In this document: positions 9,983 to 64,000 of the stretch, in pieces
Layout: every line of letters begins with the position of its first letter
Numbering within the stretch: position 1 is the stretch's first letter
Sequence record: NC_048170.1
Reading direction: 5' to 3' (one strand)
DNA: 64,000 bases
Program-made: the position numbers and the translations under genes
The notes under the pieces: generated by a model
What the model was told of the DNA's origin: nothing
Seen by the model: the letters and a program-made list of their open reading frames with translations, nothing else
The model's database searches: none

Positions 9983-10029
9983 AGCATAACCCTCCTCCAA
10001 CCCGTAAGGGAAGGAGGAGGGAATATGCT
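9983..10029. terminator. Bidirectional GC-rich hairpin between convergent genes
   Basis: AGCATA-A-CCCTCCTCC-AA-CCC-GTAA-GGG-AA-GGAGGAGGG-AA-TATGCT. Confidence 0.7.
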
Positions 10030-35884: not shown

Positions 35885-35914
35885 GCTCCTCCTTCCCTGA
35901 CGGGTTGGAGGAGC
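35885..35914 (-). terminator. Family hairpin, opposite orientation
   Basis: Minus strand GCTCCTCC-AA-CCC-GTCA-GGG-AA-GGAGGAGC, then TGCTATG. Confidence 0.6.
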
Positions 35915-35922
35915 ATACTTAA

Positions 35923-55693: not shown

Positions 55694-56122
55694 TTATTCA
55701 TTTTCAATAACTTTAAGATTCGGTGTACCGAGCGTTTTCTTCACCAACGCTTCGGCAACACGTTTCTCGATGAAATCGGTTGCATTGCTTCCGTCTATCG
55801 TACGCATATCGCCACGGAAATTGCTGAAGACCATAAACAAGTCACAACCATCGATAGGTATCGCAAGATCATAACTGACTTGTGATGCTGTGAAATGGAC
55901 ACCCACGACAACGGCGGGAACGAATTTAACCGCTATGTTATCTCCTTCTTCTCCGGTTCCGAACGGAAGCTCAACACGATCACCGATAGAGAACTGTGAG
56001 ACATCATTAATCGCGTGAGTTAGTGCGATTCGTTGCATGTCGGCGATCTTTTCCTTATTCGCGTCGCAAGGTAGGTCCAAGACTTCTTCCAACGTGAAGA
56101 ATTTACGATCGAACCAGCTCAT
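55694..56122 (-). CDS. Hypothetical protein (SH3-like beta motif)
   Basis: FSIGDRVEL...AVVVGVHF...SYDL. Confidence 0.55.
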   Translation of the reverse strand: MSWFDRKFFTLEEVLDLPCDANKEKIADMQRIALTHAINDVSQFSIGDRVELPFGTGEEGDNIAVKFVPAVVVGVHFTASQVSYDLAIPIDGCDLFMVFSNFRGDMRTIDGSNATDFIEKRVAEALVKKTLGTPNLKVIENE

Positions 56123-56123
56123 G

Positions 56124-56657
56124 TTAAGCTCCTTTGTGTTTTACGGACGATGTTAACCAGGACGATCTTACCGTGAAACCCTCAGACTCGTAGAACGCCT
56201 GGGCTTCGTCGTTATCAGCACGAACATCCAGACCGATAGAATGACCACCGCATCGGTAAGCGATGTTACGTGCTTCATTCATCAAGGCGTGGCCGATCCC
56301 GCGTCCACGGTATTCCGGTTTTACAATAATCGATGTAACATCGTGAATACCCATATGGCTCTCTGTATTCACTTCCAAGAGACCCACTGGTACTGAAGCG
56401 ATAGCATCGATCATAACGACCAACTTTGCGGTGTCTGGTAAACGCTTTTCTAATTCTAAAGCATCGTACTCGCGTTTTAAATCGGGGATATTCTCAAACA
56501 TAAACGTGGTAGCCCATGCCTCTGATTCTACATCGTCGAGAATACGGTACAGCTCACGAATCTGTCGTTTATGTGGGTAAAGGTGTGGATCGGCAGCCGT
56601 TGAGGCGATAACGCAATAGAACGGTCGTTCATTAATAACTACTGTTTTGATGCTCAT
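56124..56657 (-). CDS. GNAT acetyltransferase
   Basis: IIVKPEYRGRGIGHALM and DNDEAQAFYESEGF. Confidence 0.9.
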   Translation of the reverse strand: MSIKTVVINERPFYCVIASTAADPHLYPHKRQIRELYRILDDVESEAWATTFMFENIPDLKREYDALELEKRLPDTAKLVVMIDAIASVPVGLLEVNTESHMGIHDVTSIIVKPEYRGRGIGHALMNEARNIAYRCGGHSIGLDVRADNDEAQAFYESEGFTVRSSWLTSSVKHKGA

Positions 56658-57160
56658 GCTAAAATTCCCTCATTACCTAACAGTCGATTACGATGACGTC
56701 GGTACATTTGACAAAGTGTTGTGATTTGATAATGTTTGTTGTAACGTACCTCGATACGTTTTTGCACCTCTTTCCATGGAAGTTTATCGTATTGCCGATA
56801 ACGATGGATTTCATTTAACATACGAAGACGAGTAGGATCGGTGTTCTTTATCGTCGTGAGCTTCACACGTTGATATCCACGCTGTAGTCCCGATTCGGAA
56901 TACGTGACGTCAAACTCATCTTGAATGATGGTAATGATCTCCCGCCACCGACGGTTCTCGCCGTCACGTAAATGGACAACCCGTGATAAGATATCGTTCC
57001 GATTACGATGACTCAGTTTAATGTTAAGCATTGAAGCAATCGCGCTAATTGCTCTCTGACTCCGTCCTAACGCTTCACCTATTTCTTTCGATGTCATGAC
57101 GCCCGCGTTTCGGCGTATGAATGCGATTTCGGTTGTTGTGTATTCTTTACCTGCTGCCAT
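56654..57160 (-). CDS. Multi-repeat Myb/SANT-like HTH protein 6
   Basis: YTTTEIAFI...EIGEALGRS plus two W..I...I...F..Y type repeats. Confidence 0.7.
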   Translation of the reverse strand: MAAGKEYTTTEIAFIRRNAGVMTSKEIGEALGRSQRAISAIASMLNIKLSHRNRNDILSRVVHLRDGENRRWREIITIIQDEFDVTYSESGLQRGYQRVKLTTIKNTDPTRLRMLNEIHRYRQYDKLPWKEVQKRIEVRYNKHYQITTLCQMYRRHRNRLLGNEGILA

Positions 57161-57624
57161 TTCTTACCACGTGTGTTATAATAGTAACGCTGACAAAGAT
57201 GTGTGTGATGGTACTCCCGTTTGAACTCGACGCTGATAATGCGAGCAACTTCTCTCCAGTTAACTCCTTCATGCCGGAGTGCTGTAATACGGTCTGAAAT
57301 TTTGCACCATTCATCTGGATCGTATCGTCGTAGCTTGAGTCGTCGTATTACGGAGGCGACACTCGCTCTCGATCGGCCAAGATGATTTGACAGTTGTTTA
57401 ACCGAGTATCTGTGGATATTGTCACGAATATAGGAAATCTCGTTGTTCGTATATGCCTCATTGGTTCTCGACGAAGGGAACAGCATATACAACTTATTCT
57501 TAATCGCGCTTTCTGTGCGTTGAAATACAGAAGCCAGCTCACTAACCGGTGGTCTGGGTATCTGGTCCGCGTAATTCTCGAGGCGTGAGAGTTCCTCATC
57601 TGTCCAGCGACGGTATTTGCGCAC
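57094..57624 (-). CDS. Three-repeat Myb/SANT-like HTH protein 5
   Basis: GTG start after AAGGAG; WTDEELSRL, YTNNEISYI, WREVARII. Confidence 0.7.
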   Translation of the reverse strand: MRKYRRWTDEELSRLENYADQIPRPPVSELASVFQRTESAIKNKLYMLFPSSRTNEAYTNNEISYIRDNIHRYSVKQLSNHLGRSRASVASVIRRLKLRRYDPDEWCKISDRITALRHEGVNWREVARIISVEFKREYHHTHLCQRYYYNTRGKKWQQVKNTQQPKSHSYAETRAS

Positions 57625-58099
57625 GGGCAACTCCTTTGTTTTTCGTGTAGTAACACCAACGTTGATACAACGCATGTTTATTCGTCGTAATCCCAAATTT
57701 AACAACAACGTCGTATGTGATAACATTCCAATTTTGGGTAACGTTAAGTCGTTCCGCGATAAACGCGATAATCGCTTCCCGTTCTTGCTTTGTTAACGCA
57801 CGACGAATTCCATTAAGCCGTATAAACTGACGAACCGAGTCATACGAACGGTTTAAATCGTACGCAATCTCCCTCAACGATTTTTGTTTGATTACGGACT
57901 TGATGTACGCGCGTTCTTCTTCCGTATACGGTCGATGCTTTTGGCGTTGACGTATTCCCAAACGTCCCAGACGCGCGTCGATGCTGGCGCGTGTTCGTCC
58001 TGTCCGTTGTGCGATTTCATCAATCGTCAGCGACGTGTTCAAGTACAGGTGTATAACATCTTTTAACTCATCGTTACGCCACGGCCGAGGTCGTCCCAT
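57596..58099 (-). CDS. Three-repeat Myb/SANT-like HTH protein 4
   Basis: WRNDELKDV, YTEEERAYI, WNVITYDV. Confidence 0.7.
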   Translation of the reverse strand: MGRPRPWRNDELKDVIHLYLNTSLTIDEIAQRTGRTRASIDARLGRLGIRQRQKHRPYTEEERAYIKSVIKQKSLREIAYDLNRSYDSVRQFIRLNGIRRALTKQEREAIIAFIAERLNVTQNWNVITYDVVVKFGITTNKHALYQRWCYYTKNKGVARAQIPSLDR

Positions 58100-58577
58100 C
58101 TTGTATCCCTCTTTTCTTTCTATGATGCCACCAACGCTGATAAACAGCCTGCTTCGTACGTGTTATACCGAAATGCGCATTAACCCGTTCAGCAATGTGG
58201 TGCCAATCCTGTGTTTCTTCTAACAATGTATCAACGAAGGCTATGAAGATCTTAGTATCATCCTCGCTTAACCGCTTGAAACCATGACGGTGTGCTATCG
58301 TTCTAATACTGTTTGGATCCCTGTTTAAATCGCGTGCGAGTTGTTTGTAACTTTTGTGTTTGCAGTGCACTCTGATATATTCCAACTCATCGACACTGAA
58401 ACGTTTATGCGGTTTACGACGTTCAACATTTAAGTATATCAACCTCGATTTAATTGCACCGTACGTTGTTTCCATGATTTCTGCGATTTCACGGATTTTT
58501 AATTTCGGGTGACGATAGTACAATTCCAGCAACTGTTCATCATCCTTACGATTCCATCGTCGTACTGGAGGTTTCAC
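58074..58577 (-). CDS. Three-repeat Myb/SANT-like HTH protein 3
   Basis: WNRKDDEQL, FSVDELEYI, WHHIAERV. Confidence 0.7.
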   Translation of the reverse strand: MKPPVRRWNRKDDEQLLELYYRHPKLKIREIAEIMETTYGAIKSRLIYLNVERRKPHKRFSVDELEYIRVHCKHKSYKQLARDLNRDPNSIRTIAHRHGFKRLSEDDTKIFIAFVDTLLEETQDWHHIAERVNAHFGITRTKQAVYQRWWHHRKKRGIQDGTTSAVA

Positions 58578-58590
58578 AACGAGATTTCTC

Positions 58591-59058
58591 CTATTCTACG
58601 CGTTTTAATGCTTGAGTGTAGTAGAGGGCATGAACACCGCTTAACGTGTAATGGGTGTTAAATTCGTTATTGATGATATTCTGTATTCTCTTCCAGGTGT
58701 TATTCTCTTTTCTAAGGGTGTGTATTCGATGATAGATCATCTCTCGACGTTGCGCTTTGCATGCAACAATACCGTAACGGTAGCAGAGTTTAGCGATTGC
58801 GTCCACGCTACGGTTGAACATCGCTGCAGCTTCTTTCACGCTATGTGTCTTAAGATAATCGGCTAACATCACACGTTCTTCGAAACAACAATAGCGGTGA
58901 CGCGACATGAGTTTCCAGCGCTTGCGATTGCGGTTAATTCGACCTTGAACAGAGCCTTCGGTTCGGTCAAGCCGTGCCGCAATCTCTTGCATCGGGATAC
59001 CGTTTCGGTACAGGGTAATCAATATCGCGTCTTCTTCGGGTGTCCAGTCCTTGACCAT
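58591..59058 (-). CDS. Three-repeat Myb/SANT-like HTH protein 2
   Basis: WTPEEDAIL...EIAARLDRTEGSVQGR, then two further repeats. Confidence 0.75.
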   Translation of the reverse strand: MVKDWTPEEDAILITLYRNGIPMQEIAARLDRTEGSVQGRINRNRKRWKLMSRHRYCCFEERVMLADYLKTHSVKEAAAMFNRSVDAIAKLCYRYGIVACKAQRREMIYHRIHTLRKENNTWKRIQNIINNEFNTHYTLSGVHALYYTQALKRVE

Positions 59059-59070
59059 AGCGCCACCCCA

Positions 59071-59391
59071 TCAACGTCTTACTTTAAGCGTTATCTTGTT
59101 TCGAAAACAATAACACCGGATGGCGTGTACGCTACGATTCATTATTTCAGCAATCTCTTTTAGCGTATGTTTCTTTGCAAGCGTGGCAACCCTAACCCTT
59201 TCTTCTGGCGTGTATACTCCCCCGCGAGGTGGTAGATCACCCCATCGTTTCCTCAACTTGAGGTAACGTGCGCGAATAGAGCACGGTGTTCGATTCATGC
59301 TTCGCGCTACTTCTTTATAGCTCGCTTTTGGTGATGTACTAAGAATAAGCAGCAACGTTTCATCTTCTTTATCTGTCCAACGTTTACCCAT
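59071..59391 (-). CDS. Two-repeat Myb/SANT-like HTH protein 1
   Basis: WTDKEDETL...EVARSMNRTPCSIRARY; YTPEERVRV...EIAEIMNRS. Confidence 0.75.
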   Translation of the reverse strand: MGKRWTDKEDETLLLILSTSPKASYKEVARSMNRTPCSIRARYLKLRKRWGDLPPRGGVYTPEERVRVATLAKKHTLKEIAEIMNRSVHAIRCYCFRNKITLKVRR

Positions 59392-59395
59392 TTTC

Positions 59396-62473
<3,078 letters not shown>

Positions 62474-62553: not shown

Positions 62554-63186
62554 TCAAGACTTCACAACACATTCGACTTCGTCGTTCATATAAGCTTCGT
62601 ATAACGACAGCACTTCCTTCATTTTAATTTCAGGTAGCGCAACGGAACGAATCGCTTTCAGGATATTCCGTGTTTGATGGTGTTTAACCTTCGCTTCACG
62701 TAGTTTACAGAATTGACGGATGCAGGTATTAACCTTACCCCCTTCCGCACGTTCGAGGGCGACATGCAGTTTCAGGTCCAGTAATACTTCCGTGAGTTCC
62801 TGGGTGGCAGGATCGTTACGAATAAGCCGCACTGTACGTTCATCCGGATTCAGCATCTCGAGATACTGAAGCTTGATATGTTCAGGTACGGGTTTCGTGT
62901 TCATCATGATGGCATCAAGCTGTTCCTTAACACCCAACTCATTGAACACGTAACGTTCGATGTTTACGACGTGTGCTTTTCCTGACTCGCCATAAACCGC
63001 CATCGCACGATAGTCATCAAACAACACAGCATACAACAAATCCTGTTCCGGTCCGATGGTACCATCGATGAGCTTCGGCGCATGCTTCTTCAGGAAGCCA
63101 TAGCGAATCGCCTCATCCGGCATGAGCGTCCACGCATTAACGGGTTGCTTTACGAGTTCCATGTAACACCTCATCAAGATTATCAC
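62554..63186 (-). CDS. Hypothetical protein
   Basis: About 200 aa; a family hairpin lies downstream at 62496-62542. Confidence 0.55.
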   Translation of the reverse strand: MIILMRCYMELVKQPVNAWTLMPDEAIRYGFLKKHAPKLIDGTIGPEQDLLYAVLFDDYRAMAVYGESGKAHVVNIERYVFNELGVKEQLDAIMMNTKPVPEHIKLQYLEMLNPDERTVRLIRNDPATQELTEVLLDLKLHVALERAEGGKVNTCIRQFCKLREAKVKHHQTRNILKAIRSVALPEIKMKEVLSLYEAYMNDEVECVVKS

Positions 63187-63457
63187 TTACACCTGGCGGT
63201 ACCACGATACCGGTACGAATCACAGCAGCAACTTCCTGCATGCCTTTACCTTTCAACGCGTAGGTTTCATATACCGTATTACGTCGCGTCGTTAATCCAA
63301 CAAATTTACATACAACCATGTTGTTTTCTGAAAGGTAGGCGGTGTCGAGTTCGCCGTGCAACAATTCTTTTTCTTTGGTATCAATGCCTAATAACGCAAT
63401 TTGATAAGCAGAAAGTTTCCAATAGCGCATGTTATCACCCAAACTGTTAAGAAGCAT
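63137..63457 (-). CDS. Hypothetical protein
   Basis: About 100 aa. Confidence 0.5.
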   Translation of the reverse strand: MLLNSLGDNMRYWKLSAYQIALLGIDTKEKELLHGELDTAYLSENNMVVCKFVGLTTRRNTVYETYALKGKGMQEVAAVIRTGIVVPPGVSDNLDEVLHGTRKATR

Positions 63458-63863
63458 CCTGTTTAATGTCGATGACTATTTCCGTTCGAACCGGATTAGT
63501 CAGCACAGCACGCATGCGTTCAAGCATCATTGGGTTATCCGTAACCACCACATCGGCGTAACACAATGGATGACTTTCGAACGCTTCAGTGTCGCTTACT
63601 AACAGAACACCCATCACATTTACGTATTGCGGTATGCGTCCACGGATGCGTTGCCACATGTCTTGAGTAAGGTCTTCGTTTTCTAATGCGACCACGACAA
63701 CAGGACTGATGTTTACCGGGAAACGCGGGTGCACCGTACGACGAAATGTTACCCAGTTTTCGACGTGGGATAATGCAAGTTCAAGAGAACAGCATTTTGG
63801 AGAAATCTGTATGTTTATTTGCTGAATCAATGAAAGGGGGTTTTGTACAGTCGCTTCAGCCAT
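63447..63863 (-). CDS. Hypothetical protein
   Basis: 138 aa. Confidence 0.55.
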   Translation of the reverse strand: MAEATVQNPLSLIQQINIQISPKCCSLELALSHVENWVTFRRTVHPRFPVNISPVVVVALENEDLTQDMWQRIRGRIPQYVNVMGVLLVSDTEAFESHPLCYADVVVTDNPMMLERMRAVLTNPVRTEIVIDIKQDAS

Positions 63864-64000
63864 TTACTTTTTCCTGAAAATCAATGTCGGTAAGCCGTTT
63901 CTTACAGCATAATACAACACTAAGAGGTTAATCTTGCCTGCGGATACCGTAAGCATTTTACGACGACGTGGTAAACTAACCGGTACGGTAGATGCCATCG
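63864..64000 (-). CDS. Small or partial CDS at the window edge
   Basis: Open frame ending in TAA immediately before the ATG at 63863. Confidence 0.4.
   Translation of the reverse strand, partial: MASTVPVSLPRRRKMLTVSAGKINLLVLYYAVRNGLPTLIFRKK

Follow-up and report, generated by a model that had tools for sequence, protein, structure and literature searches.

The D5 protein of phage T5 is encoded by a single 255-aa gene lying directly downstream of an NAD-dependent DNA ligase (ligA/ligB). Its record annotates it as a DNA-binding protein that replication and late transcription require and that takes part in shut-off. The helix-turn-helix (HTH) of D5 also binds the msDNA of retron-Kva2, a type IX retron, which leads to abortive infection, and escapers carry D5 mutations. 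Archaeal Cbp2 contains two HTHs and Cbp1 three imperfect HTH repeats, and a basic linker tethers these domains on DNA (PMC3597662). Among jumbo phages, lineage-specific expansions of Myb-type HTH proteins have been described in the Bacillus phage G group and were proposed to act as phage-specific transcription factors (Iyer et al. 2021, PMC7824862).

The window, that is, the whole 64,000-nucleotide stretch of DNA analysed here, corresponds to positions 62001-126000 of the genome of Escherichia phage vB_EcoM_Goslar (Goslar). Goslar is the E. coli model for the nucleus-forming phage family, and tools for RNA knockdown exist. Current accounts of how nucleus-forming phages regulate their genes invoke two phage RNA polymerases, and we know of no transcription factor characterised in these phages. 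Six consecutive minus-strand paralogs, gp119 to gp114 (window positions 56654-59391), now provide six candidate site-specific DNA binders in Goslar that are open to direct testing. All six genes gain a family assignment. Five genes annotated as "hypothetical" are now tied to T5 D5, a protein of classical genetics recently found to trigger retron defence. No mention of gp119 to gp114 themselves was found in the literature searched, and the phage G study (PMC7824862) does not mention Goslar.

Organization of the array and its surroundings

The array and its neighbours comprise the following features, in which R1, R2 and R3 denote the three module types.

56124-56657, minus strand: gp113, GNAT acetyltransferase (Acetyltransf_1, E 7e-15)
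56654-57160, minus strand: gp114, slot 6, 168 aa (long form), R2R3R3
57094-57624, minus strand: gp115, slot 5, 176 aa, R1R2R3
57596-58099, minus strand: gp116, slot 4, 167 aa, R1R2R3
58074-58577, minus strand: gp117, slot 3, 167 aa, R1R2R3, GTG start
58416-58565, 58269-58409 and 58098-58265, minus strand: R1, R2 and R3 of gp117, respectively
58591-59058, minus strand: gp118, slot 2, 155 aa, R1R2R3
59071-59391, minus strand: gp119, slot 1, 106 aa, R1R2, pI 10.5
59396-60130, minus strand: gp120, accessory insertion in the interval between ligase and array, not of the HTH family
60090-62165, minus strand: gp121, NAD-dependent DNA ligase, upstream boundary of the array

The six proteins are small (12-20 kDa), very basic (pI 9.8-10.5) and contain 17 modules in total, comprising 11 of the R1/R2 type and 6 of the R3 type. 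BLASTP establishes their paralogy, with E values down to 1e-29 and none of the six lacking a partner at E <= 5e-8, at an identity of only about 20-35%. No DNA-level repeat was found in the array, which indicates that the duplications are old. Module HMMs run against the whole 237-kb Goslar genome in six frames detected no further copy beyond the array. A sequence-only reading of this DNA had proposed six very basic paralogous multi-HTH genes at 56654-59391, with one R1R2, four R1R2R3 and one R2R3R3 architecture. The coordinates, the paralogy, the basic character and the exact set of 17 modules all agree with that proposal.

The genes are tightly packed, with junctions of +12, +13, -26, -29 and -67 nt within the array and -4 nt from gp114 into the GNAT gene. 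The GTG start of gp115 is preceded by AAAGGAG, and the region encoding the C-terminal tail of this protein overlaps the start of gp114. The deposited gp114 start at 57097 interrupts the R2 HTH; it is corrected here to the long form of 168 aa, which is the gene call in a relative (L004). Linkers between R1 and R2 are basic-rich by sequence in four of five proteins, and their net charge, for the segments as cut, is +3 or +4 in three and 0 in two.

In relatives, the array directly follows the NAD-dependent DNA ligase. The interposed gp120, present only in Goslar and one relative (L019), gave no family match and is now recognised as an accessory insertion. At the opposite end, gp113 begins within the end of gp114, a 4-nt overlap of start and stop seen in each of the three lineages (3/3), and the SAM-methyltransferase-like gp111 lies two genes past gp113. 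The array sits near a GNAT and a methyltransferase-like gene, as had been noted earlier, and a functional link between gp113 and the array may be envisaged.

Modules, predicted folds and distant relatives

Judged by their sequences, R1 and R2 are versions of a Myb/homeodomain-like HTH repeat of roughly 48 aa, and their mutual homology is clear (hhalign 97.6%, E 2.6e-12). R3 stands apart from them: its three helices are longer, it is SANT/trihelix-like in character, and it is specific to this lineage. Profile comparison detected no sequence relationship between R3 and either R1 or R2, and searches with R3 by sequence and by fold returned no significant match. An AlphaFold2 model of gp117 (pLDDT 85.5, pTM 0.48) contains nine helices arranged as three three-helix units (residues 10-22, 28-34 and 39-48; 62-71, 77-84 and 88-98; 105-121, 125-136 and 142-159), which supports the multi-HTH claim of the earlier reading. 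The predicted helices form three-helix HTH bundles of about 50 aa, as in Myb/SANT, and the low pTM suggests flexible tethers between the units. R3 predicted alone reached a pLDDT of 87.8 and a pTM of 0.70. Foldseek neighbours include c-Myb R1R2R3, the SNAPc4 Myb repeats, Reb1, Pax, Tc3 and Cbp2, all of them multi-HTH, site-specific DNA binders, although no whole-chain comparison with the PDB gave a significant E value (best 0.056).

The resemblance to eukaryotic Myb/SANT proteins lies in the tandem three-helix HTH modules and the WTxEED first helix, and c-Myb R1R2R3, SNAPc4 and Reb1 are the top PDB fold neighbours of the Goslar model. With the Pfam Myb/SANT families (PF00249 and PF13921), gp119 R1 scores 34.1 and 30.4 bits (Myb threshold 24.4) and gp117 R3 exceeds the PF13921 gathering threshold with 27.3 bits; gp118, gp116, gp115 and gp114 fall below the gathering thresholds. 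In the alignments, no single module carries the three regularly spaced Trp residues of Myb. R1 has the first Trp only, the second and third being replaced by Ile/Val and Leu/Tyr; in R2, Tyr/Phe takes the place of the first; R3 keeps the second and usually the third. To describe the array as a eukaryote-style three-repeat Myb system would mislead. Its nearest kin are tandem-HTH proteins of phages and prokaryotes, and R3, rather than a third Myb repeat, is a distinct module without detectable relationship to R1/R2. For GcrA (PF07750), the best score was 14.1 bits against a gathering threshold of 26.9.

A closer connection leads to T5 D5. The PHROG family phrog_323 ("transcriptional regulator, D5-like") matches all six proteins (E 1.1e-18, 7e-18, 1.2e-14, 1.4e-16, 8.1e-19 and 8.4e-10) and D5 itself (E 1.2e-71), and also takes in gp65 of Listeria phage B054 and gp44 of B025. 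The Goslar R1/R2 HMM finds three repeats in D5 (residues 73-100, 135-164 and 208-234) and four in B054 gp65, and D5 aligns with the Goslar module at 88.9% in hhalign (E 2.4e-6). Both systems share the tandem repeat of roughly 48 aa with the pattern WTxEE...EIA...GR..x.V..R, and both lie directly downstream of an NAD-dependent DNA ligase. They differ in that D5, a single gene product, starts with about 70 additional N-terminal residues, absent from the six shorter Goslar proteins, and in that R3, present in five Goslar proteins, is absent from D5 (R3 HMM E 0.06). The full-length D5 architecture (profile positions 3-270) is not matched, as the Goslar proteins cover only positions about 81-270. 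At 32% identity, the ligases of T5 and Goslar do not demonstrate that ligase and D5 were inherited together as a module. At the sequence level, homology with D5 is remote and confined to the repeats, and gp119 to gp114 are anciently duplicated members of a phage "D5-like" tandem-HTH family distantly related to T5 D5.

Cbp2 (2LVS) is the solved structure that matches best, aligning across both HTHs and the linker (E 2e-9), and a weak match to Cbp1 spans the three modules of gp117. The likeness is that of small basic proteins built of imperfect HTH repeats with a basic linker. However, the Goslar array has no CRISPR context, and its R3 is of another type rather than a further copy of R1/R2. Membership in the Cbp1 family itself is excluded by NCBIfam HTH_Cbp1 scores of 20.2 and 16.0 bits, where the cutoff is 140. 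Further relatives of R1/R2 are poly-repeat proteins of prokaryotes, which number in the thousands. The Bacillus phage G group likewise combines a jumbo phage with a multi-copy Myb-type HTH set, but it is another phage group with RsfA-like proteins, and NCBIfam gave no RsfA match in the Goslar proteins. Goslar differs from it in its fixed six-slot tandem array, tri-module architecture, cassette alleles and nucleus-forming lifestyle.

Slots and alleles in Goslar-like phages

Exactly six slots occur between the NAD-ligase and GNAT genes in all 11 full-length Goslar-like loci, and one additional short contig contains the last four slots only. Each slot forms its own clade in the tree. The array was earlier envisaged as a feature to be surveyed across Chimalliviridae; the survey found it only in Goslar-like phages and not across the family. 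All slots are under purifying selection, with dN/dS between 0.06 and 0.33. Across lineages, slot 2 (gp118, 88-92% aa identity) and slot 6 (gp114, 87-91%) are nearly invariant. Slots 1, 3, 4 and 5, on the other hand, occur as deeply divergent alleles (39-50% aa identity, dS saturated), the most divergent being slot 4 (gp116, 39% between Goslar and L006). The flanks of these alleles are 93-97% identical, with sharp breakpoints that coincide with gene boundaries. Such divergence within near-identical flanks indicates that four slots exchange alleles by cassette-like recombination. Slot 1 has also lost R3 in Goslar-type genomes, while its relatives retain R1R2R3 in 152-157 aa. This allele turnover within a fixed six-slot frame constitutes a natural experiment on the evolution of DNA-binding specificity or immune visibility in a phage population.

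The putative recognition helices follow the slots. For helix 3 of R2, identity is 58% among members of one slot, including alleles of 39-47% overall identity, and 19% between slots; for helix 3 of R1, the values are 51% and 25%. The helix-3 strings on which the sequence-only reading based its view of diversified paralogs (TPCSIRAR, TEGSVQGR, TYGAIKSR, TRASIDAR and TESAIKNK) were correctly read, and the contrast between within-slot and between-slot identities strengthens that view.

A putative panel of DNA-binding regulators and competing explanations

Building on the demonstrated homology, fold, paralogy, six-slot conservation, purifying selection, slot-specific helices and recombinational mosaicism, we infer DNA binding, specificity and a regulatory role, and the six proteins probably represent a panel of site-specific DNA-binding regulators, which is the most likely reading. 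Each would be a chain of two or three three-helix modules, which fold independently and are connected by short linkers of mostly basic character, and would bind double-stranded DNA as a monomer. The third helices of R1 and R2 may occupy successive major grooves, tethered by the basic linker, as in c-Myb R2R3, Pax, Tc3 and Cbp2, an arrangement that would read an extended asymmetric site. R3 could add a third DNA contact or a protein-protein surface. The six proteins may read six different sites, since helix 3 differs from slot to slot but is maintained between deeply diverged alleles. As a subfunctionalised panel, they would regulate phage DNA transactions, for which T5 D5 suggests replication, late transcription and early-gene shut-off as candidates. 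A search for candidate binding sites found none, with a terminator-like hairpin as the only over-represented DNA word, and allele cassette replacement at four slots, unusual for housekeeping regulators, counts against this reading.

The basic character and multiple copies of the proteins, together with the cooperative binding of duplex DNA by D5 described in the older T5 literature, would suit a non-specific coating of the phage DNA in the nucleus by chromatin-like or nucleoid-organising proteins. The sequence-only reading had likewise raised chromatin-like organisers in the phage nucleus, and also host-takeover factors, as possible roles. Bulk coating is quite unlikely, as identities of about 20-35% with slot-specific conserved helices form the pattern of specific rather than bulk binders, and a coating role would make six distinct genes redundant. 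A role as sigma-like, RNA-polymerase-binding factors, in which mimics of sigma region 4 redirect phage or host polymerase, draws on Sigma70_r4_2 scores above the threshold of 25.7 bits (gp116 28.0, gp117 27.6 and gp118 34.4), weak ECF-sigma matches in NCBIfam, and the suggestion that phiKZ-like phages may use transcription factors with their own polymerases (Iyer et al., PMC7824862). It appears highly improbable: Pfam detected no sigma region 2 or 3 in the six proteins, the NCBIfam scores of 16-22 bits face cutoffs of 43-212, the matches reflect a generic HTH, and phiKZ-type infection is independent of host RNAP (PMC4666361). Phage homing endonucleases (HNH, LAGLIDADG) have DNA-binding regions built of the same repeat type as R1/R2, which raises the idea that the array consists of orphaned DNA-binding arms of such enzymes or of mobile elements, kept for site protection or competition between co-infecting phages. 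The repeats match the HNH families phrog_1891, 8446 and 7545 (E down to 2e-8, HTH parts only) and occur in mycobacteriophage HNH endonucleases and methylases; predicted phage endonuclease structures, including one of the chimallivirus BcepSauron, match the Goslar model, and the alleles are mosaic. Nonetheless, none of the six proteins (0/6) matches a Pfam nuclease family (HNH, GIY-YIG or LAGLIDADG), slot order is fixed in 11/11 full-length loci, and each slot is a clade, so that inheritance is positional rather than mobile. Intron or intein context is also lacking, the Goslar group I introns and HNH gene lying elsewhere in the genome, and this origin is very unlikely.

An interface with host immunity deserves more weight, yet it is still unlikely as the main role of the proteins or of some slots. 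The HTH proteins could be sensed by nucleic-acid-sensor defences or act as decoys or blockers of defence nucleic acids, and the allele cassettes would then reflect escape. This agrees with four of six slots bearing deeply divergent alleles between near-identical flanks, with Cbp2, the closest solved structure, binding the DNA repeats of a defence locus, and with the sensing of T5 D5 by a type IX retron through msDNA. On the other hand, dN/dS is below 1 in every slot, slots 2 and 6 hardly vary, PADLOC gave no match, and the link to D5 is remote. The recognition helices are also among the best-conserved elements within a slot, which points to a conserved target rather than escape. Sensing is in any case compatible with the preferred reading as regulators, which can themselves be sensed. 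Speculatively, and apart from immunity, the six proteins might instead be the missing factors that give promoter specificity to the sigma-less RNA polymerases of chimalliviruses in this lineage. A view closer to the immunity reading, to which we likewise give a small chance, regards the array not as ordinary regulators but as a modular panel for recognition where phage meets host or another phage. In that view, a core job would fall to slots 2 and 6, and slots 1, 3, 4 and 5 would pass from one co-circulating Goslar-like phage to another as cassettes of a whole gene each, because host nucleic-acid sensors such as type IX retron msDNA may detect HTH surfaces or because the HTHs may neutralise those sensors.

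Layout and module content of the gp119-gp114 array

The 4.2 kb surrounding the array match Escherichia phage vB_EcoM_Goslar, a jumbo phage that forms a nucleus, at 100% identity, and the window spans positions 62001-126000 of its genome. The deposited record carries gp119-gp114 as six consecutive minus-strand genes. They lie within a co-directional block, listed here in order with window coordinates:

gp121: NAD-dependent DNA ligase
59396-60130, minus strand: gp120
56654-59391, minus strand: gp119-gp114, the array (slots 1 to 6)
gp113: GNAT acetyltransferase
55694-56122, minus strand: gp112
gp111: SAM-methyltransferase-like protein

Only gp119 is named in the record ("SANT/Myb domain-containing protein"), and gp118-gp114 are entered as "hypothetical". 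The six proteins measure 106, 155, 167, 167, 176, and 168 aa, have pI values of 9.8-10.5, and match one another in pairwise BLASTP with E-values down to 1e-29. Multiple alignment resolves three modules, arranged as R1R2 in one protein, R1R2R3 in four, and R2R3R3 in one. Module HMMs count 17 copies (11 R1/R2 and 6 R3), all inside gp119-gp114, and six-frame searches turned up no further copy elsewhere in the window or the 237-kb genome. The sequence-only reading of six consecutive basic paralogs of 106-176 aa, with these architectures and about 17 repeats, was thus correct. R1 and R2 are homologous (hhalign 97.6%, E 2.6e-12, with modules pooled from three phage lineages). Kinship of R3 to R1 or R2 is not detectable (hhalign probability 3.9% and 25.5%). 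No DNA-level similarity exists between the six genes, which indicates that the duplications are old. Notable DNA-level tandem repeats are absent within 56000-60200, as are Rfam families and tRNAs across the whole window.

The start of gp114 should be corrected. The deposited position (57097, minus strand, 147 aa) drops the first two helices of the N-terminal HTH, and the proposed ATG at 57160 (168 aa) has GGTAAGAA just 5' of it. The long N-terminus, which shares 67 nt with the tail of gp115, is kept in all three lineages of Goslar-like phages (Goslar, L003, and L006 types), and the 168-aa form is called in one NCBI assembly. Programmed frameshifting at gene overlaps was ruled out because the overlaps are not kept in L006.

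Fold and relatives of the modules

In Pfam, R1 of gp119 exceeds the Myb thresholds, R3 of gp117 exceeds PF13921, and gp116-118 exceed Sigma70_r4_2, with many other HTH families falling just short of threshold for the array proteins. Such a pattern marks a generic three-helix HTH. The AlphaFold2 model of gp117, built on an alignment of 15 sequences, contains nine helices in three three-helix units (pLDDT 85.5, pTM 0.48), the low pTM being expected for beads on flexible linkers. Foldseek matches the whole model exclusively to multi-HTH site-specific DNA binders, namely SNAPc4 Myb repeats, c-Myb R1R2R3 on DNA, the Tc3 and Mos1 bipartite domains, Reb1, DUX4, Pax6, and Cbp2; their E-values are non-significant because the inter-domain geometry differs. 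Modelled alone, R3 forms three longer helices (pLDDT 87.8, pTM 0.70). Its nearest PDB folds are SANT (DMAP1), plant trihelix GT-1, small-terminase HTH, and Mu/TnpE HTH subdomains at TM 0.63-0.68, none of them significant (E >= 0.78), and the R3 profile has no significant match among PDB sequences.

Of the three Myb tryptophans, the alignments show just the first in R1, and the second and usually the third in R3. This pattern, together with closer prokaryotic relatives, rules out membership of the eukaryote-type Myb family; sigma factor, GcrA, Cbp1, and RsfA membership was ruled out on profile scores. R3 is a module distinct from R1/R2, and no eukaryote-type Myb repeat occurs among the array modules. 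The earlier description of Myb/SANT-like multi-HTH proteins therefore stands at the fold level (AlphaFold2, Foldseek, and Pfam) and fails in the sense of eukaryote-type Myb repeats.

PHROG 323 ("transcriptional regulator, D5-like") already covers the R1/R2 repeat family, and all six array proteins match it at E 8e-10 to 8e-19. The top solved structure by sequence is 2LVS (E 2e-9), with c-Myb behind it at 1.6e-4. The 2LVS entry is archaeal Cbp2, which binds CRISPR DNA repeats and has a basic linker tethering its two HTHs; its relative Cbp1 has three repeats (PMC3597662). Searched exhaustively with a profile, 1.84 billion representatives yielded 10,098 matches at E <= 1e-3, of which 61 reached E <= 1e-30. 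The top matches beyond Goslar-like phages are proteins of 300-900 aa with up to nine stretches of the same ~48-aa repeat, sometimes helicase-fused, found in bacterial chromosomes and prophages. Among the closest, the metagenomic protein P0012 (807 aa) places nine WTQEEDxxL-type HTH repeats after an N-terminal ResIII/Helicase_C helicase. This prokaryotic poly-HTH family is large and essentially unstudied, and may merit separate study.

GenBank phages with the R1/R2-type repeat include Listeria B054/B025 ("D5-like"), Streptococcus, Geobacillus, and Leptospira phages. Goslar is the sole chimallivirus among 31 matching records, and no array was found outside Goslar-like phages. In tblastn against 50,697 phage records, gp116 and the R3R3 part of gp114 matched Goslar alone; word-seeded homolog searches gave nothing beyond Goslar-like orthologs, and the divergent ortholog P0031 matched nothing in IMG/VR. 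Across the phage-record, word-seeded, and profile searches, R3 and the short R1R2R3 architecture turned up only in Goslar-like phages.

A remote relative is phage T5 D5 (255 aa), annotated in its record as a DNA-binding protein that takes part in shut-off and on which DNA replication and late transcription depend. D5 matches PHROG 323 strongly (E 1e-71) and contains three repeats by the Goslar R1/R2 HMM; its profile alignment with the R1-R2 pair reaches 88.9% probability (E 2.4e-6). D5 lies directly downstream of the NAD-dependent ligase genes of T5, and in Goslar relatives the array directly follows its NAD-dependent ligase. However, the T5 and Goslar ligases are just 32% identical, so the common gene order amounts to a hint at most, and a co-inherited ligase-D5 module is unsupported. 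In Goslar and the related locus L019 only, gp120 (235-244 aa, 86% identity) stands between ligase and array. It has no Pfam or PHROG match, and neither the L003 and L006 types nor four other Goslar-type genomes carry it, a distribution that indicates an accessory insertion.

Slot conservation and allele mosaicism

Twelve loci were gathered with the neighbouring GNAT as anchor and by exact-protein look-ups; 11 are full-length (genomes of ~209-249 kb), and L022 is a 4.4-kb contig carrying the last four array genes. All 11 full-length loci have exactly six genes, and the order of modules is the same in each. Slot 1 is R1R2R3 in the L003 and L006 types, which implies that R3 was lost from Goslar-type gp119. 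In a maximum-likelihood tree every slot forms a clade (support 86-100%), with slots 1 and 2 and slots 3 and 4 as sisters; the six-fold duplication is thus older than the three lineages. Purifying selection acts on all slots (dN/dS 0.06-0.33).

Recognition helices follow the slots. With AlphaFold2 helices projected onto an 18-sequence alignment, R2 helix 3 is 58% identical within slots (deeply diverged alleles included) versus 19% between them, and R1 helix 3 51% versus 25%. The contrast is far smaller in scaffold helix 2 (R2, 55% versus 36%; R1, 43% versus 38%). The proposed diversification of helix 3 between paralogs emerges strengthened, and the pattern supports a prediction of slot-specific DNA recognition.

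Unexpectedly, alleles are distributed as a mosaic. In the flanks L006 is the nearer to Goslar (ligase 93%, GNAT 97%, dS 0.25-0.42). Between the same two, slots 2 and 6 are 90-92% identical, and slots 1, 3, 4, and 5 only 39-47%, with saturation of synonymous sites in slots 3 and 5 and high dS (1.6 and 2.2) at slots 1 and 4. Sliding-window nucleotide identity changes in sharp steps at gene boundaries:

Nucleotide identity between L006 and Goslar by segment
Ligase: ~90%
gp119: 46-64%
gp118: 88-93%
gp117-gp115: 46-64%
gp114 and GNAT: 88-99%

Judged from these alignments, the mosaic is one of whole-gene allele replacement via recombination and not of fast drift. Just past the GNAT, gp112 shows the reverse mosaic: the L003 and L006 copies share 92% identity with one another and 62-63% with Goslar, and L019 carries the non-Goslar allele type.

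Candidate roles and neighbouring features

The best-supported reading, built on the demonstrated homology, fold, conservation, and slot-specific helices of the array proteins, is a subfunctionalised panel of six D5-like proteins that bind DNA site-specifically. Two tethered HTHs, with R3 in addition, would let each protein read an extended asymmetric site, and the panel as a whole would regulate phage DNA transactions. In the hunt for binding sites, scans for sigma-70 promoters and terminators showed no enrichment, and genome-wide k-mers returned only a terminator-like hairpin. In all three lineages the gp113 GNAT shares 4 nt with the last array gene; speculatively, it could modify the lysine-rich array proteins.

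The allele cassettes at the array slots suggest that the proteins may also, or instead, act at an arms-race interface, and a precedent makes this concrete: according to a 2026 preprint, the T5 D5 HTH binds type IX retron msDNA and sets off abortive infection, and phages that escape are mutated in D5. Simple escape, however, fits poorly with helices conserved within slots and dN/dS below 1. PADLOC defence-system libraries gave no match to the array proteins. Descent from homing endonucleases is a less likely reading. HTH portions of HNH endonuclease families in PHROG match the array proteins more weakly than PHROG 323 does, and mycobacteriophage HNH endonucleases and methylases carry the R1/R2-type repeat at their N-termini. 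Sigma mimicry, to which the Sigma70_r4_2 matches might point, is also less likely. The same grade applies to chromatin-like coating by these basic proteins with slot-specific helices.

A general description exists of phage-encoded transcription factor sets in jumbo phages, among them a Myb-type HTH expansion of the phage G group (PMC7824862), and no literature mention of gp114-gp119 was found. What appears undescribed is the tandem array fixed at six slots in a lineage of nucleus-forming phages, together with its lineage-specific R3 module, the cassette-like turnover of alleles, and the link to T5 D5 by homology and gene order.

Several further features were noted. A D12-class (Dam-like) DNA methyltransferase lies a few genes upstream of the ligase in L003 (4426-5250) and L006 (4379-5206); the matching Goslar region is upstream of the ligase at window ~63100-63900, and whole-genome tblastn found no homolog in Goslar. 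Two annotated group I introns interrupt RNA polymerase beta-subunit genes outside the window (Goslar genome 169269-169645 and 211817-212245), one of them adjoined by the HNH endonuclease gp186, which lacks R1/R2 modules. A conserved GC-rich hairpin, CCCTCCTCCAACCCGTAAGGGAAGGAGGAGGG, occurs at no fewer than eight intergenic sites, several annotated as terminators:

Window: 9988-10023 and 35887-35915
Goslar genome: ~4156, 27746, 48107, 49783, 61012, 134585, and 174274

Copies also lie less than 50 nt from both record ends (12 and 237264), beside poly-A runs.
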